NCBI GenBank assembly: GCA_035084275.1
Contig: CM068771.1
Span: forward strand, 620,001-684,000
Direction: 5' to 3'
DNA from: Hydrolagus colliei
Taxonomy: Eukaryota
Length of the DNA stretch: 64,000 nt
Numbering within the stretch: position 1 is the first letter of the stretch; every line of letters begins with the position of its first letter. Positions 1 through 37,493 of the stretch are shown here, in pieces. A model generated the notes under the pieces. That model was not told the DNA's origin, ran no database searches, and saw nothing but the letters and a program-made list of their open reading frames with translations. The translations under genes were made by a program, and so were the position numbers.

Positions 1-34
1 GGGGTGTACATAGGAGGTGGACTGTGCTATGTGG

Positions 35-218
35 GGCAGAGGGAGTCACTGACTGACCAAGTAACAGATGACAGGAGGTGGACACAGCAGCTCATTGGTG
101 TATCCCAGGCCATTGCTGACTCGTATCTAAACCCGTGCTGTTGATATGTTTGTTCTGTGTTAAATCATTGTTTATCTTATTAATGTCTGAGGCGTTTAAT
201 CCCAGCCAGGGACTTTCC
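35..218 (+). promoter_or_regulatory. Orphan X1-Y-kB cassette, copy 1
   Basis: X1 CCAAGTAACAGATG 57-70, 20-bp spacer, Y CTCATTGGTG 91-100, GGGACTTTCC 209-218. Confidence 0.65.
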
Positions 219-299
219 AACCACAGCCACACTTCCCCCTCCTGAACCATTCTTCACACCCTCCTTCTAAACTGCTTCCCTTCATAATCCATTGCTCCC

Positions 300-760
300 A
301 CTTCTAAATGGTATCAAAAAGGCTAATGGGATGTTGGCCTTTATCTCGAGGGGCTGCCATATAGAGAAGAGGGAATGATTCTTCAACTAGCAAAAAGATA
401 AGAGAGTCTTGGTCTGACCCCATCTGCTATACTGAGTTCCATTTGGGGCACTGCAGCTCAGGAAGGATATGTTGGCTGGGTGGAGGGTGGTGGGTGGTGG
501 TGGTGGGGGGGGGGGGGGGAGCGGTGGGGGGGGTGGGGGTGCAATGCAGATTCTCCAAAAATGATACCAGGAATTAACGGGTAAAATTACCTGGGCAGGT
601 TGCACTAACTTGGTCCCTGACGTTTGTAAGGTGAGGAATGATCTGATCGCGTTTTTGAAAATAATAAAGGGATTCAGTAGCGTCGTTACAGAGAAACTAT
701 TTGCTCAGTTGGGGGAGTTCAGAACAAGGAGCCAATCCTTCTGGGAGTGAAATTATAAGG
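300..760 (+). mobile_element. CR1 LINE ORF2 C-terminal fragment
   Basis: aaaaaggctaatgggatgttggcctttatctc encodes the [10 protein letters not shown] motif; decayed. Confidence 0.75.
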
Positions 761-782
761 TTGATTTTCACCCAATTAGTAA

Positions 783-1079
783 CAATAATAATTATCCTTT
801 CCTTTTGATATAGAGATTTTCATGTCTTCTAGATGTCTGCAAGTACTTCTCAGAATATAATGTAAAGTGAATTGACAGTATATATATGTGGGCAAAACAT
901 GGCAGCGAATTGCACGCCACAGTGTCCCACAAACAGTCGTGGGTTGAAATAACCAATTTCTTTTAGGGATTATTAGGCATGTGGAATACGGAAACTTGCC
1001 CAAGGTTTCACCCTGCGTGGAATTGAACTCAAGTCTCTCACTTGTAAGGCGAGTGCTCTAACCACTGAGCTACAGGACT
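783..1079 (-). mobile_element. tRNA-derived SINE with Deu-like body and L2-like tail
   Basis: Reverse strand gtagctcagtggttagagcac head (A/B boxes), conserved body, tatcaaa..gga(taa)n tail. Confidence 0.85.
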
Positions 1080-1859
1080 AAGTGGAAAATTCTGGAACTG
1101 TCTCCCCCAAAGGGCTGTGTTGCTGAATCCATTCACAGTTTCAAAACAGAGCCAGACAGATATTTGTTAGGTCAGGGTACTAAGGGATATGGGGCAAGGG
1201 TGGTTAATTCAAGTTGAGGTACTCATCAGCCATGATATAATAAAATGGTTTGACAGCCTCCTCTTGTTTCTCAGTTTGTAATCTACTGTCTGGTCCACAC
1301 TAAACCTGAGACTGTCAATGTATGTGAGAGAGAGAGTGTGTAATTTAGTGTTTCAGTATGTGTTTGATTTTGTATATGTGTGTGTGTGTGACTCTGTGTT
1401 TGTGTGACTCTGTGTGTTTATTACCATCTTGATGCACGGGTGGGAAGCACAGATTCACCCGAATGATACCAGTGTTTAAAGAGTTATATCATGACAGGTT
1501 TCATAAATTTGTCCTCTATTTCCATGAGTTTGGCATATTAAGGGATAATCTGCTCTATGTTGTTAAAATAACAAAGGGATTCAAAAAGGAAAATAGAGAG
1601 AAACTGTTTCTTCTGATGTGGGAATCGAAATCAACGACCACATTCTTAAAGTTAGACCCAACAACAACAACAAAAAACTTTACATTTGCCTTTCATGTCA
1701 GGTGGATGTCCAAAGTCCCTGGACATACAGTGTTTCCAACTCGAGCTGGAGTGGGGATAGGGAAGAGTGGAGGGAAGGGAGGGGAAAGATTGCAGATGGC
1801 ACCAACGAAGGGAAGGGCCTTGAGGTGGAAATTGAAAGAGGGGGTTGGGCAGAGGGATT

Positions 1860-2290
1860 ATGGGATACAATTCTAGAGGATGGAGGCAGATTGGCTGTCA
1901 CAACCTCACCACCAAAGCTGCTGAAACCCCCATTCATGCCTTCATTACATCTCGGCTTGAATATGCAAATGACCTACTTGACGGCCTTCCCAATTCCTCC
2001 CTCCACATGTTGCAGATAATCCAGAACTCTGTGGCCCATGGCCTCTACTGTTCCAAAAACCGTGACCCCCATCTCCCCCAACTCGATTGACTCTACATAA
2101 TCCAGAGGATTCAATTCAAAATCCTGGTCCTTAGATTTAAATCACTCCACAACCTCGCCCCATCCTACATCTGTGACCTTCCCTCCCCCTATCCTCCTGT
2201 CCCCAGCTCGAGTCTGGCACAGTGACTATCCACCGCTTTGGGACATGCTCCGGATGAGAAAGGTGCTATACAAGTGTAATTTTGTTGTTG
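1860..2290 (+). mobile_element. Old L2 LINE 3' fragment
   Basis: Decayed AAETPIHAFITSRLEY...QNSVA...IQFKILVL motifs and (ttg)n tail. Confidence 0.75.
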
Positions 2291-3199
2291 TTGAAGACTT
2301 GCCCACAGATGGTGAGGCAGGTGGGTCAGGGGACTGGAGGGGACCATTAGTATGGAGCCTATTGAGCAGAGGGAGCAGACAGCTTTGTCGGGGATAAGGT
2401 GGTCAAAGAGATAGGGTGGGGTAAGGCCATGGATGGCATTCAAGGTAAGGACAGGGTGTTAAATTGAAACTTCTGAATGATGGGTAGTCAATGGAGTCGG
2501 GAAAGAATAGGAGAGATCTTGGTGTGGGAGAGGACTGGGGCTGCAGAGTTCTGCAGTCAGTGAAGGGAGCAGTTGGGAAGGCAAAAAGCAGGGCATTGGC
2601 ATAGTCGAGCCTGGTTGTGATGAAGGGATGAATGAGAGTTTCAGCAGCTGGGTGAGGTTTTGGTGAAATCAGGCAATATTGCAGAGGTGTGGGAAGACAA
2701 AGTGGGTCCTGGCTTGGATGTGGGGGAGGGAGGACAGTTGAGGATCGAACAAGACACCTAGGTTCTTGACTGGCTTGGTGTGATGGAGTGTGCAGCTATG
2801 GAGGTTGATGCTGCCAGTGCCATAGCCTTTAAATTAGAGCCAGGCCATTTACCAGAGAAATCAGGAGTAAGTTTTTTTTCAATCAAGGATAATGACTGTG
2901 TTTACCCTTAAGGTTGTGGTTGATGGCTCCATACACATTTTCAAGCCAGAGATGGATATATATTTGCTAGGTTGGGATAATAATAGATATGGGGCAAGGC
3001 GGGTACTTGGAGTTCAATTTCTGATCATCCAGCATTTTATAAAATGGTGGAACAGGCTTGAGTGCCTGAATAGCCTATTCCTGTTTCTGTGTTTCTAATT
3101 CATTGCCTACCTCATTGTAAGACCTGGAACTGCCAATGTTCAAGTGAGGGAGTCTTTGTGTCACTTAATATTTGATTTTGTGTATGTTTGATTGTATGT

Positions 3200-3585
3200 G
3201 TATGACCATATGTGTGATTGTTTGCATGTGAGAATGTGTGTGTATTTATGATTGTCGCTATGGTGAAACCATAAGTAAGGAACTGGTTTACATCTCACTT
3301 CCACAAGCCAAATTTCATCCTGTCTGACTTGAGAATTCTCCGAATTATTTCATTAAAATTATACATGTCAGCATTTTAACAACAATGCAAATCAAAACTC
3401 TAGGCCAGAGGTTCTCAATCTTTGGGATGTGGCTCACAGTTGAGTTGTGAGCATTTATAGGCCCTGTCTTATCCCCTCTATCAGTCCTCTCTTAACCCAT
3501 TCTCAGGGCAGAGGGACCCTGTGTGTAGAGGAGTGTAGATACACAATATGAGGTTCAGGGCAGTGGGAGGCTATTTGGGGCATAC
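3200..3585 (+). repeat. Partial copy of the upstream part of the cassette unit, cut off by a SINE tail before the X box
   Basis: caaatcaaaactctaggccagaggttctc and cctctcttaacccattctcagggcagaggg match the reverse complement of 62760-63080. Confidence 0.7.
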
Positions 3586-3666
3586 AATGTGATAATATTA
3601 ATAATGCTTACATTTGATATAGCACTTTGCACATCTTCTAAATGTCTCAAAGTGCTTCACAGAATA

Positions 3667-3749
3667 CAGATAGACCCCGCTTAATGAAGTGGTTAGGGAC
3701 TTTAAAACCCTGTGTTTCGCGAAAATTTTGTTAAGCAAGAGTTTAACTG
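3667..3749. mobile_element. Small Tc1/mariner (Tigger-like) MITE
   Basis: TA flanks on both sides, imperfect TIRs cagatagaccccgcttaa / ttaagcaagagtttaactg. Confidence 0.5.
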
Positions 3750-4499
3750 TATTACTGTAATTGGCCGCAGCCAAAATGCCGCCCCGATCCGAGCCTCCCT
3801 GCTAACATCAGTTTAGTTCCTAGCGGTTCCTCACGCTAACATTTTTGCTGTACAGGTTGAGGAGTTCTGGAATGTGACAAAAATTGCAGGAATAAAAATG
3901 CCAATCCTTCCTGCCCCAGGCCAGGTCTGCACAGTCACCACACTGAAATATCACAACCTGAGCCCAGGCATTTCAGGACACGTGATGCGCTTCTTTCTTT
4001 CTTCCTCAATCCCCAACCCCCACCCCACCTCCTCTCTTTCTCTCAAAGAGCAGCGCCTCTTCGACTGTGCCTTCTGCTCCCCTCCTAACTCTTCCATCTC
4101 TCCTACTCTCCTTCCCCTACCCCGACCGATCCCCCCCGTGCCTGGGTCCCGACCTGACTGTTCAGTGCATTGGGATGTCCTCGCGACATGAAAGCCGCTC
4201 TATAAGTGTAATTTTGTTGTTATTGTTGTTGTTAGGGTGGGTCAGACAGGAGAAATAAAGTAGGCCAGAGGCTGTTCGGTGGCTGGAGTGGACAGGTTGA
4301 TATGGGGTTAGCAGTCGGAGAGGTAGGGAGGAGCAAACCCGTGGAGGACCTTGAAGGTGAGGAGTACGATTTTGAATTTGATCCCCTGAGGTACGGAGCT
4401 GGGTGAGCATGGGCTTGATGTGCAGTAGAGGACCTGAGCTGCATAGTTCCAGACAATGTGCAGCTTGTGCAGGGGAAGTGTTGGGAAGGTCAACAAGCA

Positions 4500-5920
4500 G
4501 GGATATTAGCATGTGATGTAAAGATCTTCTTTAGGATCTCTCTCTCTCTCACAGAGCAGATTCCCCAATGTCTGACTTGTCGATTCACTTGATTATTTTA
4601 TTAAAAATCACGTCAGCCTTTAAGTAAATCCCGTATGCCAGACAATCTCAATCTGGAGGTGCGAGCATTCAGAGGGCCTGTCTTAAACCCTCGCTTTGGC
4701 CAGAGAGTGACTGTGTGGTGGGTAGTAGATATACAGTGTGAGGTACAGGGCAGAGGGAGTCACTGTCTCACCCAGTAACAGGTGACGAGATGTGGACACA
4801 GCAGCTCATTGGTGTATTCCAGGCCATTGCTGACTGGTATCTAAACCCGTGCTGTTCATGTGTTTGTTCTGTATTAAATCATTGTTTATGGTATTAATGT
4901 CTGAGGCGTTGACTCCCAGCCAGGGACTTTCCAACCACATCACTAACCCTCCCACAACTCCTAATCCACTGACTGCCTCACACTGAGCCTGGGTTATGCA
5001 TGTGTAACTGAGTGTGTGTGTCTGTGTGTGTACACATATGTGTGGCAGTGTGTGTAACTGATATTCGTGTATGTGTGCAAATGTGGTTGTGATTGTATGT
5101 GGTGTGTATGGGAGTGTATAATAGTATGTGTAATTGTATGTGCAACAAAATCACATTTATAGAGCGTCTTCCACATTGGGAGGACGTCCCAAGACGCTGA
5201 ACAGTCAGGTCAGGACCTGGGCAAGGGAGAGAGGCAGGGCAGGGGGGAGGGGTGGGAGAGAGTTAGGAGGGGAGGGGGAGAGTTGGGAGGGCAGGTGGCT
5301 GAGATGCCTAGAATACTTGAAAAACAGTTTATCAAATGCACGGATTATTATTATTACACAGTGTGAGGTTCAGGACAGAGGAAGGCTGTGTGAAGGGTAC
5401 AGTGTAGGTACACAGTGTGATGCACAGGGCAGAGGCAGGCAGTGTGGGAATACCGTGAAAATACAGTGTGATCTGTGCTACCCCCTCTGGACAGTTTTAC
5501 CCTCTTTTGCAGGCTTTTATTAACCCCTCTCTCAGACCTGTGTTACCGCCCACCCCCCCTCCCTCTCAGGATTACTTTACTCCCTCTCTCAGAGCTGTTA
5601 CCCCTTGTGTTCACTCCACTGGGGAAGGATTCTGTTGACTTTCGATGCACTGGGATCTGAGGTGCCCATGGATTAATGGCTTCCAAGCACAGTAACCCCC
5701 AAACCAGAGTGCTGACCAGTCATGGGGTGATATAGTGGCTTGCAAACACGTAGTTCCTTTGCCTGGTGCTCAGCCCAGGACAGGGTAGAGGGTAATATTT
5801 GTACCTCACTCACTCCAGTGGGAAACCTCACTCACTGCCTGAATCACTTACTTAGTGGCCAAGCACTGAGATACTTATCTGCTCTGAGCCTCTGGCCTGC
5901 CAGGCTTCACTGATCTGGTT
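4500..5920 (+). repeat. Locus-specific duplicated unit carrying cassette copy 2 (homologous to 62050-63250 on the minus strand)
   Basis: Shared blocks: gtaaagatctt...cagattcccca...ttattttattaaaaat and ggggaaggattctgttga...accagtcatggggtga...ctgctctgagc. Confidence 0.8.
4749..4932 (+). promoter_or_regulatory. Orphan X1-Y-kB cassette, copy 2
   Basis: X1 CCCAGTAACAGGTG 4771-4784, X2-like TGACG, 20-bp spacer, Y 4805-4814, GGGACTTTCC 4923-4932. Confidence 0.7.
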
Positions 5921-6445
5921 ATCTATACATATTTACAGTAAAGTTGAAAAGATGTAAAAGCCAGTGGTGTAAATTCACCAACACACACAGGATTGTTTGT
6001 TGTTGGTATGAATTCCTATAATGTTAGTGGCATTTTATTTTAGCTGCTGTATATTGTTCTTTTTCTCAACAACAAAATTACACACCTTTCATGTCAGGAG
6101 GACGTCCCAAGGTGCTGGACAGTCACTGCTTCAGACCTGAGGTGAGGATATGGTGGGTGGAGGGAAGGGGAGGGGATTAGGAGTTTTTAGTGGGCCCATC
6201 AAAGAGGAGAGTCTTGAGGCGAGACTTGAAGGAGGCCAGGGAGGGGGCAAGGTGGAGGGACTCTGGGATGAAATTCCAGAGGTTGGGGGCAGAGTGGCTA
6301 AAGGCTTGCCCAAAAATGGTAGAGTAGGTGGGTCAGTGGATGTGGAGCAGGCCAGAGTCTGCTGAGCGGAGAGGGTGGACAGGTTGGTAAGTGGGTGGGC
6401 ACTCAATGTTCGATAGTCTGAAAGTTCGATAGTCTGAACACACAA

Positions 6446-6512
6446 CCCAGGTAGCAAGCCCATATGGGTTGATCCATGCCCATATGGGGCCCACATGGGC
6501 TTGCTACCTGGG
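6446..6512. mobile_element. 67-bp palindromic MITE
   Basis: Perfect 18-bp TIR cccaggtagcaagcccat / atgggcttgctacctggg flanked by AA on both sides. Confidence 0.7.
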
Positions 6513-6541
6513 AAATTTCCTATACCCGGCGTGGTTACCGT

Positions 6542-6716
6542 GGTTACCGCTCGATCGTCTGAACCGAAAATGAAATAAAGTTTGTTAATCCGAACATTTC
6601 CATCCTTAGGGTTAGGGTTAGACTTAGGGTTACGGTTAGGGGAAGCTTCGGACTAACAAATCTTCGGACTAATGAACCTTCAGACTAACGAACCTTCGGA
6701 CTATCGAGTGGTAACC
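6542..6716. mobile_element. MITE with internal TTAGGG-like repeats
   Basis: ~22-bp TIR ggttaccgctcgatcgtctgaa / ttcggactatcgagtggtaacc (19/22), 16-bp subterminal repeats, ttagggttagggttag core at 6606-6641. Confidence 0.65.
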
Positions 6717-8584
6717 GGTAAGGGGTTTGGAGGTCACGGATGTATGGTGGGGTGAGGTTGTGGAGGGCTTTAAATGTGAGGACCAGGATCTTGAATTGGA
6801 TCCTCTGTATGATGGGGAGCCAGTGGAGTTGGGCGAGGAAGGGGGAGCTGGGGTCATGGAGTTCGGAACAGTAGAGGACATGGGCCGCAGAGTTCTGGCT
6901 GCAGAGTTCAACAGAATATGAAAGAACATGGAAGGTTCTTTACGAAATAAAATTTATACTTCTGGCATGCACACTCACATTACAACTATATTATAATTAA
7001 ACTAAAATTGTCCTCCTTGCAGTGTGAGGTAAGTGATGTCTCCTTGGAGTTGAAAGGTCACCAAGGTGACATGATTGTCACAATTTAGCCAGCCTGTCTC
7101 TGTGCGCAGTGTCCAGTCCTGTTCCTTAGCCAGATAGGTCTGCGGTATTACATTATGTAAGCAGCATGTGTCCCAACAGGGAGAGAGAGAGAGAGGGAGG
7201 GGGCATTCCATTCCAAAAATCTATCTCTGTGATTTCTTGGTGTAAATGTGATGTATGCAATTCTCCACTTAGTTTGGAGATTTTTAACCACCATTATTGG
7301 TTTCCACGTGTCAGACACCTGATTTTATTATGATATTCTTGTTCAGTTTAGTATTTTCAGTTGTTTGTCTTGTTTCAGTAAACATTGGGGATGAGCAATG
7401 GTTTTCTTACAATACTACAACAACAACAACAAAATTACATTTGTTTAGGGCCTATCACATTGCAAGGATGTCAAAAGGTGCTAGCACAATAGTAATAATC
7501 CTCACATTTGATATGGAATTATTATTAATTGAAAGGTTTATTGGCTAGGGAAAAGTGATCCATCAATCAAGTTACAAGAGGGTTCCTACTGACTGCAAGG
7601 AAAACAGAGGTGTGTGGAGCAAGGAACGTTGCCTAAGGTTTCGTCCCTGCCAAGGAATTGATTCCAGGCCCTCTTGCTTGTGTGACAAATGCTCTAACCA
7701 CTGAGATACAGCACTAAACAAAGATCAACTCAGGGAGGGTTTGAGGTGACAAATTCTGAGAGGATCTGCATCAGAATGTATCAAGACAGAAGAACAAGAG
7801 GAACAGGTTTATAGTTTAGTGTACAGGGTATTTAAAGAACAGACACCAGGAAATGTTTCAACTCGAGGAGAATTATCATGGGAATAGGGTTACCAGGAAG
7901 GGGAGTAGAGTCGAAGGGGTTATTGATTCCTTCAAAAGTAAATAACCACGATACAATAATAATATTGTCACTCAATTCATGACTATTTGTGGGTCACTGC
8001 TGTTTGCACTGCTGCCATGTTTCACTCACAGTATATATAGTAAATTCACTTTATAGTACACTGTGCACTTTGAAAGGTCTCGAAGATGTAATAAGGCGCT
8101 AAATCAAAAGTGAGAATTATTATTGAAACAGATTTTTTTTAAACAGCTACTCGATGGTTTGGCGGAGAGGTGTTTGGGATTGTGTAGAGTGGTGGGTTGT
8201 GAGGGTGGGTGCTTGTGTTGGTGATAAGGAGCTGAGGTGATGTGTGTGGGTGGGTGGGGTAGGTGTGGGGCATTTGAGGCGGCAGTGGCTGGACCTGGAG
8301 TTGTGTTTCTGGTTGGAACTCGGGTTGGGGCTCTGGTTAGAGGTGGGCTTGATGGGGTTGGGGTTGGGATGGTGCTGGGATGGGGTATTTGGTTAGAGCT
8401 GGGATTGCGGCTATGTTTGTGGCTGGAGCTATGTTTGGGGCTGGGGGTTTGTGCTTGGGGTTGGGGTTGGGGTTGGTACTACGTTTGGGGCTATGGTTGT
8501 GGCTGCAGTTGGGGCAATGATTGGAGCTAGTGATAGAGCTAGGGTTTTGGGTGGGATTGCGGCTATCTTTGTGTCTATAGCTGG

Positions 8585-8950: not shown

Positions 8951-9015
8951 GACAGTAGTTTGCTGAAGTCTCCCAGCAACAAGTGAGTTGTGAGAGGCGG
9001 CCATGTGATTGGTGT
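8951..9015 (+). promoter_or_regulatory. Class II alpha proximal promoter: X1 (8972-8985 CCCAGCAACAAGTG), X2-like TGAGTTG, Y box (GTGATTGGTG 9005-9014)
   Basis: Close match to HLA-DRA X1 CCTAGCAACAGATG and Y CTGATTGG with 19-bp spacing; S box not clearly identifiable. Confidence 0.85.
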
Positions 9016-9093: not shown

Positions 9094-9157
9094 ATGGGAG
9101 CAACATTCCTCATCACCGCGACCCTGATCCTCGCCCAGGCGGTGGGGGCTGTCAAAT
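9094..9157 (+). CDS. MHCIIA: Class II alpha exon 1 (signal peptide MGATFLITATLILAQAVGAVK)
   Basis: First ATG after the Y box; hydrophobic leader; phase-1 donor T|gtgaga joins to AT of exon 2 giving Tyr. Confidence 0.9.
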
Positions 9158-12100
9158 GTGAGACTTTACAGTAACAGTCATCCATGTGCTATTACAGTCA
9201 GTGGGTTATTAGGCAGTGTGTAACTATAGTGAGTGTAATACTAATAATTCTTGCATTTGATATACTACTTTTCACGTCCTCTAAATGTCGCAAAGCGCTT
9301 CGTAGAGTATGTGGATGGACTGTATATTTGTGGGTGAAATGCGCCAGCCAATTGTGCACAGCAGTGTCCTAACAGTCGTGGATTAAAAAGTGTTTTTTTT
9401 ATTTGAGGGATTATTATTAGGTGTGTGGAGTAAGGAAACTTGCCCAAGGTTTCGCCCTGACCTGCCTGGAATCAAACCCCGGTCTCTTGCTTGTAAGATG
9501 AGAGCTGTAACCAATAAGCTACAGAACTCCACTATTACAGTCAGTGTGAGGGCTACTGTGTTTTTAGTTAGTGTGAGGGCTACTGTGTTTTTAGTTAGTG
9601 TGAGAACTAATGTGTTCTTGGTTAGTGTGAGGGCTAATGTATTATTACAGTTAGTGTGAGAGCTAATGTATTATTACAGTTAGTATGAGGGCTAATGTAT
9701 TATTACAGTCAGTGTGAGAGCTAATGTGTTATTAGTTAGTGTGAGGGCTAATGTGTTTTTAGTTAGTGTGAGAGCTAATGTATTATTACAGTTAGTGTGA
9801 GGGCTGATGTGTTTTTAATTAGTGTGAGGGCTAATGTATTATTACAGTTAGTGTGAGGGCTAATGTGTTTTTAGTTAGTGTGAGGGCTAATGTATTATTA
9901 CAGTTAGTGTGAGGGCTAATGTGTTATTACAGACAGTGTGATGTTACAGGCAGCATGAGGGCCAGTATGTTAGTGTGAGCAGTTTTGTGATTAAATAGTG
10001 TGTAGAATCAGTGTGTATGTATAGTGTGTAGACTGCCCTCCCGGATACTCACCAGCACAAAACTCTGTACACCCTTCACACTCATCAGGATCCACTGGCT
10101 CTGTTACACTAAACTCCCTAACCTCATAACACCAGGTCCCCGCCAACTCTACTGTCCACCTATCACACTTTAAACTCTGTAATCCCATCAACCTAACCCT
10201 CGCCAGCCTCCTGGTTCACTAACACACACACTAAATTCTGTACCCCTTTTACCCCAGCCTTTGCCAGCCTCCACTGCATCAACTTCAAGAACCTCTCACT
10301 CAATTTCAAATTCCTTCATGACCTCGCACATCTCAACTCTGCTTACCCTCCCCCTATCCCCCCACCCACCCCCTCCCCCCACGCCCTTACCCACATCCAC
10401 TCCAACATTTACTGCTCCCTATCAGCCCACTCCGGCCTCCTATTCATCCCTCATCCACTCCACTCCACCATCAGTGGCCGAGCTTTCAGTCACTACACTT
10501 TCAAGTTCTGCAACTCTTTCCCTTAACCCCCACCCCCACCCACCAACCCCTCCGCCTTGCCCCCTCCCCACCTTCAAATCCTGCCTACAGACCTTCCTTT
10601 TTGATCGTGCTTATGCTGGATTTCACCCTCCCTCTCCCGCTGGCTCAGTATCAGACTGTCAAGTTCTCCAAGGCACTACCACCACATGTAGGTCACTGTG
10701 TATAATTACATGTTGTTGGGTGAACAGTGTATTCAGTGTACGCAGTGTGACTAGTCAGTGTCCAGTGTGTGCAGTGTTTATGTACAATGTACAAGGTGTA
10801 CAGTGTAGTTTGTGTACAGTGTATGTGTGCATTTTGTGTGTACAGTGTGTGTTTAGTTTGTTTGTTTACAGTGCGTGTGTCCTGTGCATGAGTAGAGAGC
10901 CCAGCAGCATGAAGAGGGAACTGATTGAGGTGGAACAGAGTGAGAATTCTGTTAGGGAATGAGGTGAGACAGGAGAGATACCAGAGAGCAAGAGAAAACT
11001 ATTTAATTCAGCCGTAGAATAGGAATATTTTTTGAGATAAGGCAACCTCATATGTAATTAGACAAACAAGTCAATTAGCAGTGAATCATAGGCCAAGTGT
11101 TGGAGATTAATACAGAGGCTCTGATGCATAAGGAAGGGAGAGGAGTGTACTTGAGAACATAGCCACCCCAAATAGACAGGAGCAGGAGTGTGAGATTGAT
11201 AGCCAGCAGTAGAAGCAGAGAAGAAGATACTGGAGTTGTCCAACAGGTACTTGCCACATTGGATGAGGGAGAAGTCTGGGGAAGGAGGTCTGAAGGCAAA
11301 AGAAGGCACCATAGAGCATAAGGCAGAGCAAGCGAGAGAACAGAAATGCTGTCATTATAGGGGCTTTAAGGCATGTTGGAAATGGTTGCCAAATAAGAGT
11401 TATGTACACAAAAGCACATAATATTAGAAATAAAACAAGTGAGTTGGAAACACAAATTCAGTTCAGAGGGTAAAGCCACTACAGAGACCTGGTTGCAACC
11501 TAGGTAGGAGTCCCAGGCTGGAGCAGAGGTCAAGTGGGGATAGAAGGCGAGGAGGGAGGAGAGAGAGGAGAGCAGAGCAGGAGTGTTGCAGGGATGGGGG
11601 CATTTTGAGTGAAGGCCAGTTGGGGTCTGCGGCGGCAGCCAAAATGTGCTGAGATGTGAGACAGTGCATTAACGGGACATGGTCAGCCTGTAGGAAGCTG
11701 TGGGGGCTGGGGATGGTGGGTGGGGTGGGGGGAGGAGGAGGAGGAGAATGGGTAGGACACTCATTGTGGTTAGCAATCAGCAACCTGTAGGGAAAAGGGA
11801 AGGGGACGGAGACATGCAGGGGAGGGGAGGGAGACACAGTAGTGTGAGCTGTACTGTACCTGTTCCCAAGGATTCTAACTTGGCTTGTGGAAAAATAGGA
11901 GGAGTAAATATTGATAAAATACACTATTACAGCACTGGAAAGGAAAGATTCCAGTAAGGGCAATCAGGTAGTAGAAACAGGTAGCAGAATTAAGAAACAG
12001 AATCATTTTTACAGTATAACATGAGGACCAAATACCAGACATACAGGCTGGTAAAAGAGCATGTCTCTTTGACTTACAAATAAGTCAAAGATAAATGCTT

Positions 12101-13986
12101 AATAAAATAAATATAAATTAAAAATGGTAACGGAGAAAATAATGAGACTCAAAATAGACAAATCTCCAGGACCTGATGGTTTCCACTCCAGGGTGTTAAA
12201 GGAAATAGGAGAGGAAATTGCAGATGCATTCGTCATAATTTTACAAAGCTCGCTAGACTTGGAAATGTGCCCTTAGATTGGAATATTGCAAAGATCACCC
12301 CTTTATTTAAGATGGGAAGGAGGGAGAAACCAGGAAAGCTTGATGTCAGTTGTAGGGATAATACTGAAATCCATCATCAGGGACAGAGTGACTGAACACT
12401 TGGGAGAGACATGAACTAGTCAACAAGAGTCTGTGTGGGTTTGTGAAGTACGTTGTATTTAACTAAATTAGTTGAATGTTTTGAGGATGTCACTAAAATG
12501 GTGGATAAGTGAATGACTGTGGATGTCATTTATTTGGACTTTCAGAAGGCATTTGACAATATTCCACGCAAATGATTATTAGCAGAATTGGAAACTCATG
12601 GAATCAGAGATGTGATGTGGTTTGGTAATTGGTTGGGAGGCAGGAAACAGAGAGTAGGGATAAAGGGAACATTCTCTGATTGGTGGGATGTGATAAGTGG
12701 TGTCCCCCAGGGGTCTATCCTGGGACCTCAGCTATTCACCATAGATATCTAGATGACTTGGATGAAAGAATAGAAATTTTTGCATCCAAGTTTGCAGACA
12801 ACACTAAGGTTGGACAATCAGTAAATAGTGTAGATGCGAGTAGGAAGTTACAAAGGGACTTAGACAGATTAAGTCAGTGAACAAAGATGCAGCAGATGGA
12901 GTTCAATGTAGGGAAGTGTGAGCTCGTCCACTATGGGCCAAAAATGGTAAGGCAGAATATATTCTTAACGGGCAGAAATTAAGAACTGTGGAGGAGCAAA
13001 GGGATTTGAGTCTGTTTCCACAAATCACTAGAAACTCATTCGCAGGAGCAAAACATAATTAAAAAGGCAAATGGAATGTTGGCCTTTATCTCGAGGGACC
13101 TGGAATACACAGAGGAAGAAATAATGCTCTAATAATAATAATCCTTGCATTTGATGTAACGCTTTTCACATCTTATCATCATCTCAATATATAGAACATT
13201 AGCATAGAGCGTTAGTCAGACAACACCTGGAGACTGCGTTCAGTTTTGGGCACCACATCTCAGGAAAGGTATATTGGCCGTGGAGGGGGTGTAGTGCAAG
13301 TTCACCAGAATGTTACCATCCCTAAAAGGGCGTCCTCCTGACGTGAAAGGCACGATGTAAATGTATAGAAATGTAATTTTGATTTTTTTAAAATTAAGTT
13401 TAGTCTTGTAGCTCAGTGGTTAGAGCACTTGCCTTACAAACGAGAGAGTTTGATAGAGGGTCTGGGTTCAATTCCAGACAGGGTGAAACCTTAGACAAGT
13501 TTCCTTACACCACACACCTGATAATTATCCCTCAAAAATAAATAAATTAGTCATTTCAATCCACGACTGTTTGTGGGGACACTGCTGTGCACAATTGGCT
13601 GCCACATTTTGCCCACATAAATAGTCAATTCACTTTACAGTATATTCTGTGAAGCGCTTGGGGATGTCTAGGAGATGTGAAAAGCTCTATATCAAATGCA
13701 AGGATTAATCTATATTCTATATGAAGGTGATCACAGCCAGAGTCAGGTTGACTCTCACACACCACCTTGAGGAGAGCCCAGACACGGCCTGGCTCAGCAC
13801 CTCTGGGTGCCATCGATGGGCAGAGAGATTTCCAAGGAAGTCCTGGATATGTTGCCATCTTTATCACGGAACCTAGTATCTGATTCCCGCTTCTCCAGAG
13901 GCTCAGGGCCCAGCGCTACTGGCCACATATGGTGTCTCCCTCTCTCTCTCTGCATAGTAATGGTGTCTCTCTGTCTGTATAGAAAT

Positions 13987-14021
<35 letters not shown>

Positions 14022-17000
14022 CTCTGTATAAAAATGGTCTCTATCTGTCCAACAATGGTATCTCTCTGTCTGTTTAACAATGTTCTCTCTCTCTCTCTCT
14101 CTCTCTACAGCAATGGTGTACATCTCTCTGTGTATAACAATTGTGTGTGTCTCTATAACAATTATGTGTGTGTGTCTCTCTCTAACAATTGTGTGTGTGT
14201 CTCTCTGTGTATAACAATTGTGTGTGTCTCTCTCTGTGTATAACAATTGTGTGTGTCTCTCTCTAACAATTGTGTGTGTGGCTCTCTGTGTATAACAATT
14301 GTGTTTGCGTTTCAGTGTATAACAATTGTGCATGCCTCTCTCTCTAACAATTGTGTGTGTATCTCTCTATAACAATTGTGTGTGTATCTCTCTCTATAAC
14401 AATTGTGTGTGTCGCTCTCTCTCTCTACAACAATTGTGTATGTGTCTCTCTCTATAACAATTGTGTGTGTGTGTCTCTGTCTCTAACAATTGTGTGTGTG
14501 TCTCTCTCTAACAATTGTGTGTGTGTCTCTCTCTCTATAACAATTGTATGTGTCTCTCTATAACAATTGTGTGTGTCTCTGTCTAACAATTGTGTCTCTC
14601 TAACAATTGTGTCTCTCTCTCTAACAATTGTGTGTGTCTCTCTATAAGAATTGTGCGTGTGTATCTATAACAATTGTGTGTGTGTCTCTCTCTCTGTATA
14701 ACAATTGTGTGTATCTCTCTATACAATTGTGTGTGTGTCTCTAAAACAATTGTGTGTGTGTCTCTATAACAATTGTGTCTCTCTATATAATAATTGTGTG
14801 TCTCTCTCTCTATAACAATTGTGTATGTGTCTCTATAACAATTGTGTCTCTCTCTATATAATAATTGTGTGTGTCTCTCTATAACAATTGTGTGTGTGTC
14901 TGTCTCTCTCTCTAAAACAATTGTATGTGTGTCTCTATAACAATTGTGTGTGTATCTCTCTCTATAACAATTGTGTCTCTCTGTATAATAATTGTGTGTC
15001 TCTCTCTCTATAACAATTGTGTGTGTGTCTCTCTCTCTCTCTGTGTGCAGCAATGGTGTGTGTCACTGTCTGTCCCTGTATAATAATACCATCTGACTCT
15101 CTCCTTCAGCTCCCCCCCCGGCCCCCCCTCTCCCACCGTGTGGCCCCCCTGGCTGTGTCTGGTCAGCCCCTCACCAGGTGGTAACAGGGAAGCCCATGGC
15201 CAGTTCAGGCTGTTTCTTCATTGTCTGTCCAACACACACCAGCCTGGGGATTGCACAGTCATTCGTGGTGTACAGCGTGCGGGAGTACAGTACAGTGTGT
15301 GTGAGATGCGTGTGTCTAACCTGTAGTTTGTGTTTGTGTCAGATTTACACGATAGTTCGTTGGTGACCCTGTGTCAGGACCAGGACCAGGCACCTGTCCA
15401 GCAGTTTGATGTTGAGGCTGACTGGGATGAGCTGCTTTACATGGATTTTGCCCTGGGGAAGGAGGTCGGCCGCCTGCCTGAATTCAGCCACACAATGCAG
15501 GGCGGAGTGGAGGGGGTGTTACAGAATATTCAAACCTGTAAAAACAACTTGAAAGTGCGGAAACAGCTTTCACACGGAGACACCCCGGAGCCAAACAGTG
15601 AGTCAGCAAATACACTGGGGGGGGGGGGGGGGGGGGGGGGGAGTGTTTATACAGCACTCTGGTGTGTGTGTTTATGCTGCACTCTGGTGTGTGTGTGTGT
15701 GTTTATACAGCACGCGTGTGTGTGTGTGTGTGTGTATGCAGCACTCTGGTGTGTGTGCGTGTGTGTTTATACAGCACTCTGGTGTGTGTGCGTGTGTGTG
15801 TTTAAACAGCACTCTGGTGTGTGTGTGTGTGTTTATACAGCACTCTTGTGTGTCTGTGTTTATACAGCACTCTGGTGTGTGTGTGTGTGTGTTTATACAG
15901 CACTCTGGTGTGTGTGTTTATACTGCACTCTGGTGTGTCTGTGTTTATACAGCACTCTGGTGTGTGTGTGTGTGTGTTTATACAGCACTCTGGTGTGTGT
16001 GTTTATACTGCACTCTGGTGTGTCTGTGTTTATACAGCACTCTGGTGTGTGTGTGTGTTTATACAGCACTCTTGTGTGTGTGTGTGTGTGTGTTTATACA
16101 GCACTCTGGTGTGTGTGTGTGTGTTTATACAGCACTCTGGTGTGTGTGTGTGTGTGTTTATACAGCACTCTGGTGTGTGTGTGTTTATACTGCACTCTGG
16201 TGTGTGTGTGTGTGTGTTTATACTCTGGTGTGTGTGTGTTTATACAGCACTCTGGTGTGTGTGTGTGTGTGTGTGTTTATACAGCACTCTGGTGTGTGTG
16301 TGTGTGTTTATACAGCACTCTGGTGTGTGTGTGAGTTTATACAGCACTCTGGTGTGTGGGTGTGTGTGTGTTTATACAGCACTCTGGTGTGTGTGTGTGT
16401 ATATACTGCACTCTGGTGTGTGTGTGTGAGTTTATACAGCACTCTGGTGTGTGTGTGTGTGTGTTTATACAGCACTCTGGTGTGTGTCTGTGTGTGTGTT
16501 TATACAGCACTCTGGTGTGTGTGTGTGTGTTTATACAGCACTCTGGTGTGTGTGTGTGTTAATGCAGCACTCTGGTGTGTAAAGATTGAGTTAAATGTGT
16601 AACCCTGTTGCGATGTGAGGATTGACACAAATGTTTTACAGAAAATATACGTGTTTATTAGTTCAACATTATTATTAGTTATAAGCAATTAAATACATCA
16701 CAATATTGCTTACATTTTGATGCATTCTTCACAATGGTTTAAGTTGTCCAAACCAAGTGCTGCAGTAGAGATAGAGCAGCAATGTCCAATTTAATGCCCA
16801 TTACAAATATATACATCCATCAAAATGTATCCAAGTATTGTTGGACGGTTATCAGTTTGATATCCCAAACTATCCAGGTATTGTATGTTCCGTCATCACA
16901 CTGCATCCAGGTATCACAGCAGGTCCACAGTCTATTATGGCAAGTCCAATTGAATCCCTCGTCTGCAAATCTTTCTTCAGAATCTCTTCTGAACTGATCT

Positions 17001-20000
17001 CCATTTATCCAGTTCATTAGGTGATCTTTCACCGAGTTTCTTTTGCAAGATGGTTAATGTGGAAAAGCAAACGCAACACAGCTCCCTCTCCAGCTCTAGA
17101 CCATTTCTCCATCAGAAAATCACTGATAGGGACTGAAAACACTTGTTGTTTATCAACAGTCTTCTGCGAAGCTACTCACAGCCAGCTCCCGTCATATGTG
17201 ATTAATACATGTCTCTAATATGTGTGTATATATACTGTATAACTAATATAACTTGAGATATTATTTAACACATTAATTCAGCATCTTACATGTGTAGAGT
17301 TATACAGCACACTGACATGTGTGTATGTATGCAGTTATATAGCACACTGATGGGTATGTGTATGTGTGGTTATGCAGTACAATGGTGTGTGTGTGGTTAT
17401 ATGGCAATCTGCAGTGTATATGTGTGGTTATACACACATTGCATTGCATGTGTGTCCATGTGAGTCACTATACAGCACGCTGGAGTGTGTGTGGTTATAC
17501 AGTGCCCTGGTGTGTGATTATACAAAACACCGCTGTGTATGGATGTGGTTATACAGCATACAGATCTGCACATGATGTGTGTGTGTTCTAGTAGCGCGCG
17601 TGCACACACTCACACAAAGCACACTCACAGAGCCCACAGACAGGCACACAGATTATACATTACTCACATCTCCCAAACCTCCCTTTCTCTGCTACTCCAT
17701 TGTGTTTCCCCTCTTTTGAGCACTTTGCTCTCTAGCATCCCTCCTCTCTCTTCAAAATCTACTGTGGAGTCATGTAGCTCAGTAGATAGGCTTGCAAGCA
17801 AGAGACCTGGGTTCGATTCCAGGGTGAATCCTTCGGCATGTTTCCTTACTTCACATTCCTGATAATAATTCCTCAAATAAATAATAAATTGGTCATTTCA
17901 ACCCATAAATGTTTGAAGCGCTCTGAGACGCCGTCTGACGTAGATGGCACTATATAAATCAAAGTTGTTGTTGTTGTGTGACACTGCAGTGTGCAATTGG
18001 CTGCCGCGTTTCACCCACTTATACACAGTCAATACACTTTACCGTATATTCTGTGAATAATAATAATCATGATAATCTTTGCATTTGATACAGTGTTTTC
18101 TCTGGATGTTAAAAGGGGTTTATCAAATGCAAAGATTATCAGGATTATTATTGCTAAAGCACCTGTCTCCTTCCTCCCAGACTTGTCCTCTCTCATCTCA
18201 TCCCTGTTCCTCTGCACCAAGCACATGCTTATCATAGAATCATGGAATCTTATGGCACAAAAGGAGGCCATTCGGACCATCTAGTCTGTGCCGGCTCTTT
18301 GAAAGGAGCAATTCAATCCCGCTCCCCAGCTCTCTCCATAAACTTGCAAAACCGTCCTCTCCAACTAATCATCTAACTCTCTTTTAAAAGTTGTTATCAA
18401 ACAACTTATAATAGGAGATTTTAATCTTCATCTGAATTCCCCCGGCTCCATCTCCTCTGACTTTGCTGCCCTTTTCTCCACCTTAAACCTCACCCTCCAC
18501 ATGAACTCTGACCCACAACCATGGCCAACCCCTCGATCTAGTCATCACTCAAGGCCAAGTGATCACTGACCTGTTTATCACAGACTGGCAATTCTCAGAC
18601 CACTTCCTCTCACATCGCCCTCCCTTCCTCCAAACTCTCCACAAACCAAAATTCCCATTCCCACAACCCACCACTTCCTTTACCCTCTCTCAAATACCAT
18701 CAATTCTCATTTCAGACACCAAGTGAGATGAGGTCCTCAACTCCTTTATCTCTGAGATGGACATTTTCCTCCAGCTGCCTCCTCCTCCTACAACTATGTC
18801 ACCTTCCCGCCATGCCATGAATCCTTCCCCACGGTTCTCACCTGTGACCACGTCTCCTACCACAACACACACCTACAATATACTTTGACCCAACTCTCCC
18901 AACTCCCTTTGCCCCACTATCTCCCAGTTGAAACCCACAACCTGCTGCCTCAACCTCTCCCCACCCAGCCGATTGTTGTTCAACTTCCCTTCCCCTGCCC
19001 ATTGCGGACACACACTGTAAATCAGTTTCTCCTCAGGCTCCCCCTCTCAAAACAGCTGTTTGTGTGTGTGTGAGTGAGTGTGAGCTGAATGGGGGATAGA
19101 GAGGCTCTCTGTCTCTTCTCAGTACTGTATGGTACTGTATGTGTTAGACACTTTGGGTGTAGACTAACACTCTCTCTCTCCACAGTCCCACCAGAGATCT
19201 CTGTCTACCCCGAGGAGCCTGTTGAGTGGGGTGTGATGAACACCCTGATCTGCCACGCTGCTGGATTCTACCCTCCGGCGCTGAAGATGAATTGGTTGAA
19301 GAACAACGAGCCAGTGAAGGAGGGTGTGAACATCACTGAGTATTACATGGAGAAGGATTACTCTTTCCAGAGGTTCACCTACCTGAGCTTCGTGCCCCGT
19401 CCTGGGGATGAGTTTACCTGCAAGGTGGAGCATCGCAGTCTGAGGGAGCCTGCAGTCCACTTCTGGGGTCAGTAACGTGTGGGGAGGGGGGGGAATGGGG
19501 GGGCAGTGTGGGGCACAGCAGCCTGAAGGAGCCCGCAGTCTACTTCTGGTGTCAGTGAGGTGGGGAGAGGGAGGATGGGGAGTGTGTGGGGCAGTGAGGG
19601 GTTAGTGTGGAGAATAGCAGCCTGGGGGAATCTGCAGTCCAATTCTGGGGTCAGTGAGGAACGGAGGGGGCAGTGAGGGAGGGGACAGTGTGGAGGGAGA
19701 GTGGGGGAGAGGGCAGTGAGGGAGGGGGCAGTGAGGAAGGAGAGTGGAGGAGGGGGCACTGAGGGAGGGGGCAGTGGGGGAGAGGGCAGTGAGGGGGGAG
19801 AGTGGGGGAGTGGGCAGTGAGGGAGGGGGCAGTGAGGAGGGAGAGTGGGGGAGGGGGCAGTGAGGGAGGGGTAGTGAGGGAGGGGGCAGAGATGAGGGTG
19901 AGTGGGGAGGGGGCAGTGAGGAGTTTGGCAGTGAGGAAGGGAAGTGGGGGAGGGGGCAGTGAGGAGGGGAAGTGGGGGAGGGGGCAGTGAGGGAAGGGGC

Positions 20001-35850: not shown

Positions 35851-37493
35851 TTTATACATATGTGTTTGTCAATGGTGAACAAAGCATAGTTCCCACAAAG
35901 CTCAGATTGTGTATGCAATCAGTCTCAGCTGCCCTGCCATAGTCCCAGACATGTTCGATATTATTTTATTATAAATTTTATATATTTTATTATTATTCAC
36001 CTCTTTCTACATCTGCACTGAATTCCCACTCAGTTTGCTCCTTACTCTGCTGCTCTCAGTGACTATGTGTGTGCTTTCTTCCATGTCCACCACATTGCCC
36101 ATCTTCACCTATCCCTCAACCTAACAGCTGCTGAAACCCTGGTCTTTGTTACTTCTGACTGGGCTACTCTAACACCCTCCTAGCCAGTCTCCCCTCCTCC
36201 ACCATCCACAAAATTTAACTCATACAAAACTCCATCACCCACATTCTCACCCTCACCAAACTTTGAAACACTATTACCCCAGTCCTCGCCAGACTTCACT
36301 GGCTCCCTGTCACAGAATAGATCGACTTCAACATCCTTACTCTTATGTTTAAATCCCTTTATTCCTCTGCACCTCAATACCTCACTAACCTCCTCTATCC
36401 TAACAGCCGTATCTGCCGCCTCTGTTCTACTGGGTCTGGCCTCCTACTTCAGGCCCGTACGCAGGGGGGGTGCGACGGGTGCGTACGCACGCCCCCCCAA
36501 ATTATAAAAGGTCCACATTTTCCGGGTTAGAGAATTGTATTTTTTATCAAATTTAAACACCAAGTAAAGTAAATTTATTGAGCATTTGTGTAACAATCAG
36601 TTCTTCAAAACTATGTATAAATTATAAACACACATCTTTGAATGTTTTAATATTAATATAAAATTATCGAGTCGCACACCAGAATCGGCGTCTACCCAAA
36701 ACATACCGCGTCGATAGAGGAGTCAATAACGCAGCGAGTCTGTGACTCGTGACTGGATAAACATAGGTGCGCGCCAAGACTCAAATCCTCGTTTGGAAAT
36801 CATCCCGTAAACAGCCACAAGGGTAGCACCACTTCTGGAAGTTAAAATCATCTTTTCATCTGGTCACCGTAAGTAAAAATTGCTCAAGTTTTGAGAGGTG
36901 TGACTGTAATGCTAGCAAACAATGACAACATATTTACAAGCTTCTGAGAAATTAAAGCTTTTGAGAACCCAACAAAAAAGTTATATGCTGGACGGGAATG
37001 CCTATCTTTAAAAGAAATACTCATGGACGTAGACCTATGCTTTAGCGCCTATTCTACGTGGTGTGTCAATCGGAAATCATCCCGTATACAGTCACTACAT
37101 CAAAAGGTAGCACCACTTTGTGGAAGCTGAAATCGTATTTTAATCTGATAAATGTAAGTAAAAATGACTTAAGTTTTGATAGGCGTGTTTCTGAAATATC
37201 ATGTTTCTTGTTTTGTCTTGATTATCACATTTGATTTATATTATTAAAAATGTATTCCTGTAATTAAAAATTGCTTTTAGAGACGTCCATTGGCATGCAA
37301 AAAAAAATGACCGCAAAGATAAACAGTGCTACTTTATTTCACATTCCGTTTTGTACCCAGAGTGAAAAAACATCAATGTCGCACGAATTTGGCATAAAAA
37401 TAGTTTCACCATCATCTGATCGAGCGAACTCGGGCATTGACAACCACACTTCTCCACTGATCCCTTCTCTCCATGCAGCCTGAAAACTCCCGC

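Follow-up and report, generated by a model that had tools for sequence, protein, structure and literature searches.

Gene-less X-Y-kB cassettes flanking the MHC class II gene pair of a chimaera are candidate distal regulatory modules

Distal X-Y (S'-Y') modules as well as locus-control elements of the MHC class II genes are on record for human and mouse, and the mammalian S'-Y'/XL distal enhancers are thought to act by looping. In the promoter of the invariant chain gene (CD74), NF-kB/Rel sites and a GC-rich box are located downstream of the Y box of the S-X-Y module; work on the invariant chain (Ii) in the 1990s is said to have dealt with sites termed kB-1 and kB-2. At class II promoters, the proximal S-X-X2-Y arrangement constitutes the RFX/CREB/NF-Y/CIITA enhanceosome (PMC2278383, PMC1802633), in which the S box is pivotal for recruiting CIITA according to Muhlethaler-Mottet 2004, as cited in PMC1802633. 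Human distal S'-Y'/XL enhancers are named in Table 1 of the same paper (DRAe at -2.3 kb, Ii S'-Y', #2, #4, #6, and #8), which gives Krawczyk et al. 2004 (J Immunol 173:6200) and Gomez et al. 2005 (J Immunol 175:1030) as sources. A full-text literature search for X and Y boxes in cartilaginous fish found nothing.

The window analyzed here, i.e., the whole 64-kb stretch of DNA, contains two holocephalan class II genes, alpha (9094-24815) and beta (41589-~59060). Their closest protein matches were C. milii cDNAs (alpha 73%, beta 69%). This alpha-beta pair is flanked by three copies of a gene-less core of approximately 200 bp, hereafter the cassette. Copy A (34-249, + strand; X1 57-70, 20-nt spacer, Y 91-100, kB 209-218) is located about 9 kb 5' of the alpha promoter and continues into a weak homology tail up to ~285. 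The window begins 33 nt upstream of copy A, and a LINE fragment starts at ~305. Copy B (4735-4939, + strand; X1 4771-4784, Y 4805-4814, kB 4923-4932) shares the orientation of the alpha gene and precedes its promoter by 4.2 kb. Copy C (62723-62494, - strand; X1 62687-62674, Y 62653-62644, kB 62535-62526) is situated 3' of the beta gene, about 3.4 kb from its last coding exon, and faces back to it. The Y box CTCATTGGTG and the kB site GGGACTTTCC are present in each copy. An earlier note on this DNA had described the three copies with a 20-bp X1-Y spacer and a perfect kB site about 110 bp downstream, and all of these features were recovered at the positions given there: the distance from X1 to Y is exactly 20 nt and that from Y to kB exactly 108 nt in three of three copies. 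The note had also regarded the Y box as identical to that of the beta promoter, which holds, since CTCATTGGTG occurs four times in the window, in the three cassettes and at 41295-41304 in the beta promoter. Neither a leader exon nor a class II pseudo-exon was found after any copy in the 64-kb window, as the note had stated for leader exons, and the sequence downstream of the core is unlike among copies A, B, and C.

The cassette resembles the mammalian S'-Y'/XL enhancers in that a gene-less, promoter-type X-Y module with promoter-like spacing is placed within the class II locus, kilobases from the promoters and with no exon attached; both occur in either orientation. In contrast to these enhancers, it was found in a holocephalan, with a counterpart in sharks, carries no recognizable S box, has a kB site at a fixed distance of 108 nt (82 nt in sharks), and consists of 90%-95% identical duplicates bracketing a gene pair; its binding and activity are putative. 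With the proximal S-X-X2-Y arrangement it shares the X1 box, the adjoining X2 position, the inverted CCAAT of the Y box, the order and orientation of these elements, and the 20-nt spacing. Unlike the proximal arrangement, the cassette has neither a leader exon nor a recognizable S box, copies A and C have a degenerate X2, and the sequence outside a module of 44-50 bp is unrelated. As a lead only, the CD74 promoter has the same order as the cassette (kB after Y), which is the reverse of class I promoters; it differs in being a true promoter followed by exon 1 and in not being MHC-linked in mammals.

The X-Y module was compared with the promoters of the window's own class II genes. The alpha promoter module (8972-9014, + strand) consists of X1 CCCAGCAACAAGTG, a 19-nt spacer, and Y GTGATTGGTG, with the leader exon at 9094-9157; the beta promoter module (41263-41304, + strand) consists of X1 CCCAGAAACTGGTG, an 18-nt spacer, and Y CTCATTGGTG, with the leader exon at 41589-41682. 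The X1 box of the cassette is CCAAGTAACAGATG in copy A and CCCAGTAACAGGTG in copy B. It is of the class II type: with CC(C/A)AGTAACAG(G/A)TG, copies B and C agree with the alpha/beta X1 consensus at all 13 specified positions, compared with 12 of 13 for the alpha X1 itself. The sequence GTAACAGATGAC is common to the cassette X1 and the white shark beta promoter, and the X1-X2 stretch AGTAACAG(A/G)TGAC(G) matches GGTAACAGATGACGG of the white shark beta promoter and AACAGATGACGAG of the Mobula alpha promoter, with a further resemblance to the X-box probe CCTAGCAACAGATGCGTCA of PMC4806502. In copy B, the X2-like site TGACGAG (4782-4788) is identical to that of the Mobula alpha promoter, whereas copies A (TGACAGG) and C (TGACCAG) do not contain the CG core. 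The Y box has the orientation and, at 20 nt from X1, the spacing of nine chondrichthyan class II promoters (17-21 nt). Upstream of X1, where an S box would be expected at about 15-17 nt, the cassettes have no motif in common with the promoters of alpha, of beta, or of the sharks. Apart from the X-Y module of 44-50 bp, the cassette shows no extended homology to the alpha and beta promoters; only the functional part appears to have been retained.

A strict regular expression (X1, 17-21 nt, ATTGG), for which 0.005 matches are expected per shuffled 64 kb, matched nothing but the cassettes and the two class II promoters of the window. A permissive X-Y expression gave 16 sites in 512 kb compared to 0.45 expected: 12 of them fall to the three cassettes and to annotated or proximal class II promoter modules taken together, two correspond to dE1 and dE2 of sharks, and two are unexplained. 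Within the window, the 19-mer around Y has three matches (0.02 expected) and GGGACTTTCC likewise three (0.25 expected). Because the copies are 90%-95% identical duplicates of one block of about 200 bp, they count as one independent event and not as three. Judged by its sequence, the X-Y module of the cassette is real, class II-specific, and far beyond chance.

The kB site GGGACTTTCC matches GGGRNWYYCC perfectly in three of three copies, and the standard NF-kB probe in PMC4806502 has the same sequence at its core. Its identity among the copies is unremarkable, since approximately 90% of the core columns are invariant, and the proposed NF-kB input gains nothing from this conservation by itself. 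No kB site was present within 250 bp of any true promoter examined.

In two sharks, a similarly built conserved non-coding element, dE1, is located 3' of class II beta, a counterpart that was observed directly. In S. canicula (locus L005, 57762-57380, inverted), it lies 7.4 kb 3' of the beta gene, and in R. typus (locus L007, 37930-37558, inverted) 7-8 kb 3'. In the other species, the expected position is beyond the 10-kb flank covered. The catshark dE1 comprises X1 CCTGGCAACAGATG, X2 TGACATAA, a 20-nt spacer, and Y TTCATTGGCT, followed by GGGGATTTTCC 82 nt past Y and then by CCCTTCCCCC; no exon was found near it. A kB consensus placed 60-130 nt away in this orientation would arise by chance with a probability of 0.012 per module. 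Conservation between the catshark and whale shark elements reaches 79% over 246 bp; X1-X2 and kB are intact in the whale shark, and its Y box is mutated to CAATGG. When the 10-kb 3' flanks of the two shark orders are compared, only three non-TE blocks align collinearly, and dE1 is among them. The element shares with the cassette X1-X2, the 20-nt distance, Y, a kB site in the same orientation some 80-110 nt further on, and a C-rich tail (ACTCA..CTTCCCCC). Like copy C, it is gene-less, placed 3' of beta, and inverted. It differs in the distance from Y to kB (82 instead of 108 nt), in its kB variant (GGGATTTTCC instead of GGGACTTTCC), and in copy number, being single-copy in sharks compared to three copies of the cassette in the chimaera.

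The two elements are unalignable by nhmmer or BLAST. Profiles of dE1 and dE2 gave no nhmmer match in the window, and a profile of the core gave none in five shark and ray loci (L001-L005). Over the 80-nt Y-to-kB interval, ungapped identity between cassette and dE1 was at chance level, and in comparisons of 50-mers flanking the kB site, the cassette was not uniquely top-ranked in the window. The 30 nt past kB gave a divided picture. Copy C exceeded composition-matched shuffles (P=0.0003 with catshark dE1; P from 0.0003 to 0.03 with sharks) and copy A did so with the catshark (P=0.009; whale shark P=0.17), whereas copy B showed no similarity to either of the two sharks (P=0.23 and 0.79). Since profile searches gave no match, the interval comparison was at chance, and copy B is dissimilar past kB, the link to sharks is one of architecture and position and not of alignable homology. 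The 10 kb that precede the alpha genes of sharks and rays contained no distal X-Y modules, and a composite ETS/IRF motif like that of dE2 gave no match in the window. The conserved shark 3' region around dE2 is non-coding, because all six frames matched equally.

On balance, we interpret the cassette as a gene-less, distally placed cis-regulatory module that belongs to the S-Y enhanceosome type of MHC class II and has a putative regulatory function; it is probably not junk but a long-standing switch that operates at a distance. The reading as a distal enhancer put forward in the earlier note is partly supported by the X1-(X2)-Y module, which is truly of the class II type and spaced as in promoters, by its gene-less position kilobases from the promoters, by its duplication on both sides of the alpha-beta pair with a B-C core that diverges more slowly than its flanks, and by the similarly built shark block. 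It is weakened by the lack of a recognizable S box, by an X2 in which TGACG is intact only in copy B, and by the finding that distal X-Y boxes in human cells can be occupied by CIITA and yet leave transcription unaltered (PMC13653327). From these features, we infer factor binding, dependence on CIITA and NF-kB, enhancer activity, and the looping targets. RFX would bind X1, a CREB/ATF factor the adjoining X2-like site, which is best kept in copy B, and NF-Y the inverted CCAAT of the Y box 20 nt away. This X-Y platform would recruit CIITA, and an NF-kB/Rel dimer on GGGACTTTCC 108 nt downstream may add an activation-dependent input. The module may then contact by looping the alpha and beta promoters, which bear the same X-Y module.

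The cassette could instead be primarily a promoter, of an unannotated non-coding RNA or of an alternative upstream first exon, coregulated with class II by CIITA. An X-Y module is usually promoter-proximal, a TATA-like TATCTAAA is located about 25 nt past Y, and conservation extends approximately 40-80 nt beyond kB in the chimaera as well as in sharks. Mammalian distal S-Y modules are reportedly transcribed extragenically, a finding said to go back to Masternak in 2003. However, no conserved splice donor or ORF was found downstream of the core, the downstream sequence is dissimilar among the three copies, and the dE2 region of sharks is non-coding. This proposal overlaps with the enhancer reading, and the two are inseparable by the letters of the DNA; as the primary role of the cassette, a promoter appears unlikely.

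The history of the copies bears on a second proposal, that they are relic promoters of duplicated class II genes whose exons were lost and which decay without present function. Copies B and C reside in an inverted duplication of 1.4-2.7 kb, a structure read directly from the alignment of the two arms. The left arm (4506-6883, + strand) has unique flanks at 4506-4734 and 5480-6010, a TE-like part at 6202-6883, and other repeats inserted at 4990-5480; the right arm (60424-63192, - strand) carries a SINE inserted at ~62880-63050. As the core occupies the same position in homologous unique flanks, segmental duplication and not insertion gave rise to B and C. A partial copy D (3308-3575, + strand) contains the 5' flank block common to B and C as far as GGGCAGTGGGAG; its divergence sets in exactly at the start of the core, a SINE comes next, and neither X-Y nor kB is present. 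Copy A has the core alone in common with B and C. Copy C may represent the ancestral position, 3' of beta and inverted, because sharks have the similarly built conserved element there. The inverted segmental duplication would have placed copy B upstream of alpha, and a further local duplication would have given rise to copy A and the remnant D, with the outcome that inward-pointing copies bracket the gene pair.

The promoter-like module, the orientation of copies A and B as alpha, the repeated segmental duplication of the region, the core already gone from copy D, and an X2 degenerate in two copies are what decaying promoters could look like. The pattern of divergence, which was measured directly, argues otherwise. 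Between B and C, the core has nine mismatches in 201 positions and two gap columns (95.5% identity), compared to 131 mismatches in 854 positions and many indels in the flanks (84.7% identity; ~87% in the non-TE flanks). The core diverged about three times more slowly than the flanks (binomial P ~1e-6) and with almost no indels, and copy A as an outgroup is still 91% identical in the core. Gene conversion could also have raised the identity of the B and C cores. The likeness to live promoters, confined to the X-Y boxes, fits selection and not uniform decay. In addition, tblastn with both chains revealed no class II pseudo-exons near any copy, and a gene-less counterpart is conserved across shark orders. 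A relic origin is quite unlikely on these grounds.

We consider it very unlikely that the core is a fragment of a transposable element (MITE, solo LTR, or non-autonomous element) common genome-wide, with the X-Y-like sequence acquired by chance or capture. The repeat is about 200 bp long, its copies are 90%-95% identical, and the window is very TE-rich. A 24-nt imperfect inverted repeat (4755-4778 vs. 4894-4917), also present in copy C, resembles MITE termini, the 5' flank of copy D without the core is readable as an empty site, and copy A shares the core alone. Against an insertion stands the position of the B and C cores in homologous unique flanks. No tRNA or Rfam match was obtained in 1-7000, which includes copies A and B, and a whole-window tRNA scan gave none in any copy; the only tRNA-like matches belong to a separate SINE, and a tRNA/Rfam origin of the core was rejected. 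A hairpin formed by the internal inverted repeat was likewise rejected, as the folding of the core DNA is unremarkable (z = -0.24). Inspection of the copy edges revealed no evident poly-A tail, target-site duplication, or TG..CA ends. No copy falls within the gene span (9-59 kb), in which each true TE is present 5-15 times, and none was found in 50 kb of introns and intergenic DNA rich in true TEs. The chance origin of an X-Y module is improbable at the rate given above for shuffled DNA, the same architecture is a single-copy conserved element in sharks, and the core had no match in 450 kb of shark loci. When an open 51-codon frame across copy B was searched against 1.84 billion representative proteins, three weak matches (E ~1e-4) and no strong one were returned, which is a weak test for TEs because the species is apparently absent from the collection.

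It is least probable that the cassette binds the enhanceosome without transcriptional effect or is architectural, with the inverted copies B and C that bracket the pair marking the borders of a class II domain: CIITA-bound sites of the human locus are described in PMC2292219 as interacting with CTCF sites, and in human cells deletion of the distal DR/DQ super-enhancer X-Y boxes removed CIITA binding and left the transcription of DRB1 and DQA1 unchanged (PMC13653327), but inspection of the blocks revealed no CTCF-like motif, and the shark-conserved kB site and C-rich tail point to an inducible activator input and not to a pure boundary.

Returning to the distal regulatory module, a bolder version of this reading unites the cassette and the shark dE1 as one CIITA-enhanceosome/NF-kB enhancer located 3' of beta, more than 400 million years old and later inverted-duplicated in holocephalans to bracket alpha and beta. 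We put this forward tentatively, as a possibility we would rather doubt than assert. If the two elements do share descent, they would be the oldest known distal MHC class II control element. Together, the chimaera core of 200 bp and its shark companions dE1 and dE2 provide short, testable elements for reporter assays across species. If the cassette is functional, long-range CIITA-dependent control would already have existed at the base of the jawed vertebrates, and long-range control of class II would have been wired early to NF-kB. It would also offer a direct sequence handle on the rise of class II expression when antigen-presenting cells become activated in the oldest living lineage that has adaptive immunity.

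The cassette, a gene-less block of approximately 200 bp, is present in three copies, at 34–249 (+, copy A), 4735–4939 (+, copy B), and 62723–62494 (−, copy C), the last of which is inverted and located approximately 3.4 kb 3′ of the class II beta gene. All features described in the earlier note were found: each copy contains an X1 box, CC(C/A)AGTAACAG(G/A)TG, followed by a 20-nt spacer, the Y box CTCATTGGTG, and the kB site GGGACTTTCC exactly 108 nt past Y. The proposed match to the Y box of the beta promoter extends to the whole decamer (identical to 41295–41304), and neither a leader exon nor a class II pseudo-exon was found downstream of copies A, B, and C, as the note had claimed for leader exons. 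The copies are 90% to 95% identical and, being duplicates, represent one independent event; therefore, the retention of the kB decamer among them is uninformative when taken alone.

The window is free of N runs and contains one MHC class II alpha gene (exons at 9094–9157, 15343–15597, 19186–19467, and 24670–24815) and one class II beta gene (41589–41682, 52186–52443, 56327–56602, 57121–57237, and a last coding exon near 59022–59060), both on the + strand. The closest proteins are those of Callorhinchus milii cDNAs (73% for alpha, 69% for beta), and elasmobranch proteins reach 44% to 60%; by these values, the sequence comes from a holocephalan outside that C. milii lineage. The X-Y module of the alpha promoter (8972–9014, +) comprises the X1 box CCCAGCAACAAGTG, 19 nt, and GTGATTGGTG; that of the beta promoter (41263–41304, +) comprises CCCAGAAACTGGTG, 18 nt, and the same decamer as the cassette. 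A regular expression derived from these two modules matched only both promoters and the cassettes in the window (0.005 matches expected per shuffled 64 kb). With a permissive X-Y expression, 16 matches were obtained in the window and ten class II loci of sharks and rays (L001–L010, 450 kb in total), compared with 0.45 expected. Of these, twelve are accounted for by the three cassettes and by class II promoter modules, annotated or proximal, two belonged to conserved gene-less shark elements 3′ of the beta gene, which we named dE1 and dE2, and two were unexplained. The X-Y module of the cassette is more than a chance occurrence. Its X1-X2 string is close to those of shark and ray promoters (GGTAACAGATGACGG in white shark beta, AACAGATGACGAG in Mobula alpha) and is resembled by an X-box probe printed in PMC4806502, and its spacer lies within the promoter range of 17–21 nt. 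Beyond the 44–50 bp of the X-Y module, no likeness to the promoters of the window was found.

The remainder of the window consists mostly of repeats, namely, LINE reverse-transcriptase copies (Pfam RVT_1), a SINE family, and long minisatellites. The SINE has a tRNA-Val-like head (ARAGORN; Rfam tRNA, 42 bits) and occurs in more than 12 copies, at 780–1081 (−), 13400–13716 (+), and more than 10 further sites, with separate insertions in the flanks of copy C and of a partial copy D. Downstream of the two polymorphic exons, alpha1 and beta1, TG- or G-rich long minisatellites (15643–16580 and 52456–54418) begin within approximately 10–50 nt of the exon ends; others are located at 9533–9941, 14017–15040, 57280–57860, and 58450–58950. 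This placement is reminiscent of mammalian DRB, where a microsatellite lies in intron 2 beside exon 2. In the beta 5′ UTR and promoter-proximal region, a tandem repeat of the CACACAGCCTGTAAC type (41400–41575) stretches the distance from the Y box to ATG to 285 nt, compared with 80 nt in alpha. An inverted repeat of 2.7 kb (36211–38960 vs. 51813–49255, 98% to 99% identity) encloses the beta promoter and leader exon (41263–41682). Its arms resemble very recent copies of a single transposable element, one in the 5′ region and the other in intron 1, and the repeat could in principle permit an inversion of the promoter-leader segment or reflect an assembly issue.

Copies B and C hold the same position within a larger inverted duplication, the arms of which (4506–6010, extending to 6883, and 63192–61950, extending to 60424) are interrupted by independent SINE and other insertions. 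Copy D (3308–3575) consists of the 5′ flank block, diverges precisely at the core boundary, and continues into a SINE; either sequence was deleted here or the duplication originally ended at this point. Copy A, for which the window begins 33 nt upstream and a LINE fragment follows, has only the core in common with the others. The flank blocks do not recur elsewhere in the window, compared with 5–15 copies of true transposable elements across the introns. This arrangement, with B and C inside homologous flanks, points to local segmental duplication and not to transposition, and an origin of the core as a transposable element is unlikely. The sole trait in its favor is an imperfect inverted repeat of 24 nt (4755–4778/4894–4917 in B, 62680–62703/62541–62564 in C; 75% to 79% complementary), which starts with GGGAGTCA and ends with TGACTCCC. 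The kB site is located 5 nt outside its right arm, and in copy A the repeat is degraded. No tRNA or Rfam signal was detected for copies A and B in 1–7000, nor any tRNA in a copy in the scan of the whole window, and neither a tail nor a target-site duplication was evident where copy edges were read, which was not systematic. The core DNA folds no better than shuffled sequence (z = −0.24), and a translated 51-codon frame across copy B gave three weak matches among 1.84 billion representative proteins, a weak argument given that the species is seemingly absent there.

The cores of B and C differ at 9 of 201 positions (95.5% identity, two gap columns), whereas their flanks are mismatched at 131 of 854 positions (84.7% identity, or approximately 87% without parts resembling transposable elements) and contain many indels. 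The binomial P of approximately 1e-6 for this difference is optimistic because the block edges were picked after the fact. The core of copy A, the outgroup, is 91% identical and thereby less diverged than the younger B–C flanks, which one gene conversion between these two copies does not account for.

A counterpart in sharks is dE1. In the small-spotted catshark, it is located 7.4 kb 3′ of a class II beta gene on the opposite strand, with no class II exon nearby, and contains CCTGGCAACAGATGACATAA, an X1-to-Y distance of 20 nt, TTCATTGGCT, GGGGATTTTCC 82 nt later, and then ACTCATGCCCTTCCCCC. The whale shark element has the same relative place and orientation and 79% identity over 246 bp; X1-X2 and the kB 11-mer are intact, and Y is mutated to CAATGG. 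In the 10-kb 3′ flanks of both species, which belong to different orders, the only collinear aligning blocks other than transposable elements are the 3′ UTR, dE1, and dE2. These two species are the only ones in which dE1 was seen, the expected place in white shark, Mustelus, and Heterodontus lying beyond the 10-kb flanks examined. A kB consensus within ≤250 bp occurred in none of the true promoters examined, only in the chimaera cassettes and dE1; the chance of one 60–130 nt away in the right orientation is 0.012 per module, based on the measured density of the consensus. The 30 nt past kB resemble dE1 of catshark and whale shark in copy C (P = 0.0003 and 0.03, respectively, composition-matched shuffles) and give P = 0.009 and P = 0.17 in copy A; copy B shows no similarity (P = 0.23 and 0.79). 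Copy C and dE1 also share their placement. Searching the window with nhmmer profiles of shark dE1 and dE2 gave no match, the identity of the Y-to-kB interval to that of sharks is at chance level, and the cassette was not uniquely top-ranked in a window-wide search with the kB flank. Therefore, the relation to sharks consists of shared architecture and position, which is compatible with, but does not prove, very old common ancestry. Since the 10 kb preceding the alpha genes of sharks and rays contained no additional X-Y modules, copies A and B look like an addition of the holocephalan lineage.

The second gene-less X-Y module, dE2, is non-coding, lacks a kB site, and carries a strongly conserved sequence similar to an ETS/IRF composite, TTTCACTTCC, plus other invariant blocks. 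It is conserved at six loci of five shark species, inverted and 3.5–9 kb 3′ of beta (catshark L005 53843–53374 (−); L004 35174–34699; L006 46760–46321; whale shark L007 36330–35904; L008 41420–41200; L010 31589–31164). In the chimaera window, no such element was identified. Shark beta genes have two X-Y modules approximately 400 bp apart upstream of ATG (9264–9320 and 9660–9700 in L004, 9345–9400 and 9735–9760 in L005, 9164 and 9593 in L010), followed by arrays of 6–10 ATTGG boxes; the two modules are separated by a hairpin-forming insertion in catshark and white shark.

The defining features of the S-Y module are its S, X, X2, and Y boxes and the conservation of their order, orientation, and spacing (PMC2278383, PMC1802633), and distal examples include DRAe, Ii S′-Y′, and #2 to #8 (Krawczyk, 2004; Gomez, 2005; as cited in PMC2278383 and PMC1802633). 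The cassette shares X1, Y, order, and spacing; X2 is partly represented, in copy B only, and no S box is recognizable upstream of X1. In the human DR/DQ super-enhancer, deletion of the X-Y boxes abolished CIITA binding and left DRB1 and DQA1 transcription unchanged (PMC13653327), which calls for caution. A full-text literature search returned no paper on X/Y boxes in cartilaginous fish. The order of the boxes recalls the invariant-chain promoter, where a kB site is located downstream of Y.

The reading best supported by the sequence comparisons, to which we give somewhat better than even chances, is that the cassette is a distal regulatory module that has been duplicated; both the slow evolution of the core and the counterpart in sharks strengthen this view. 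To this extent, the duplicated distal enhancer proposed initially is retained; the unrecognizable S box and the confinement of X2 to copy B speak against it. We infer that the cassette would have enhancer activity, depend on CIITA, and receive NF-kB input. Distal X-Y modules as such were already known; what is new is that, in the oldest lineage of jawed vertebrates, such a module has a fixed kB partner.
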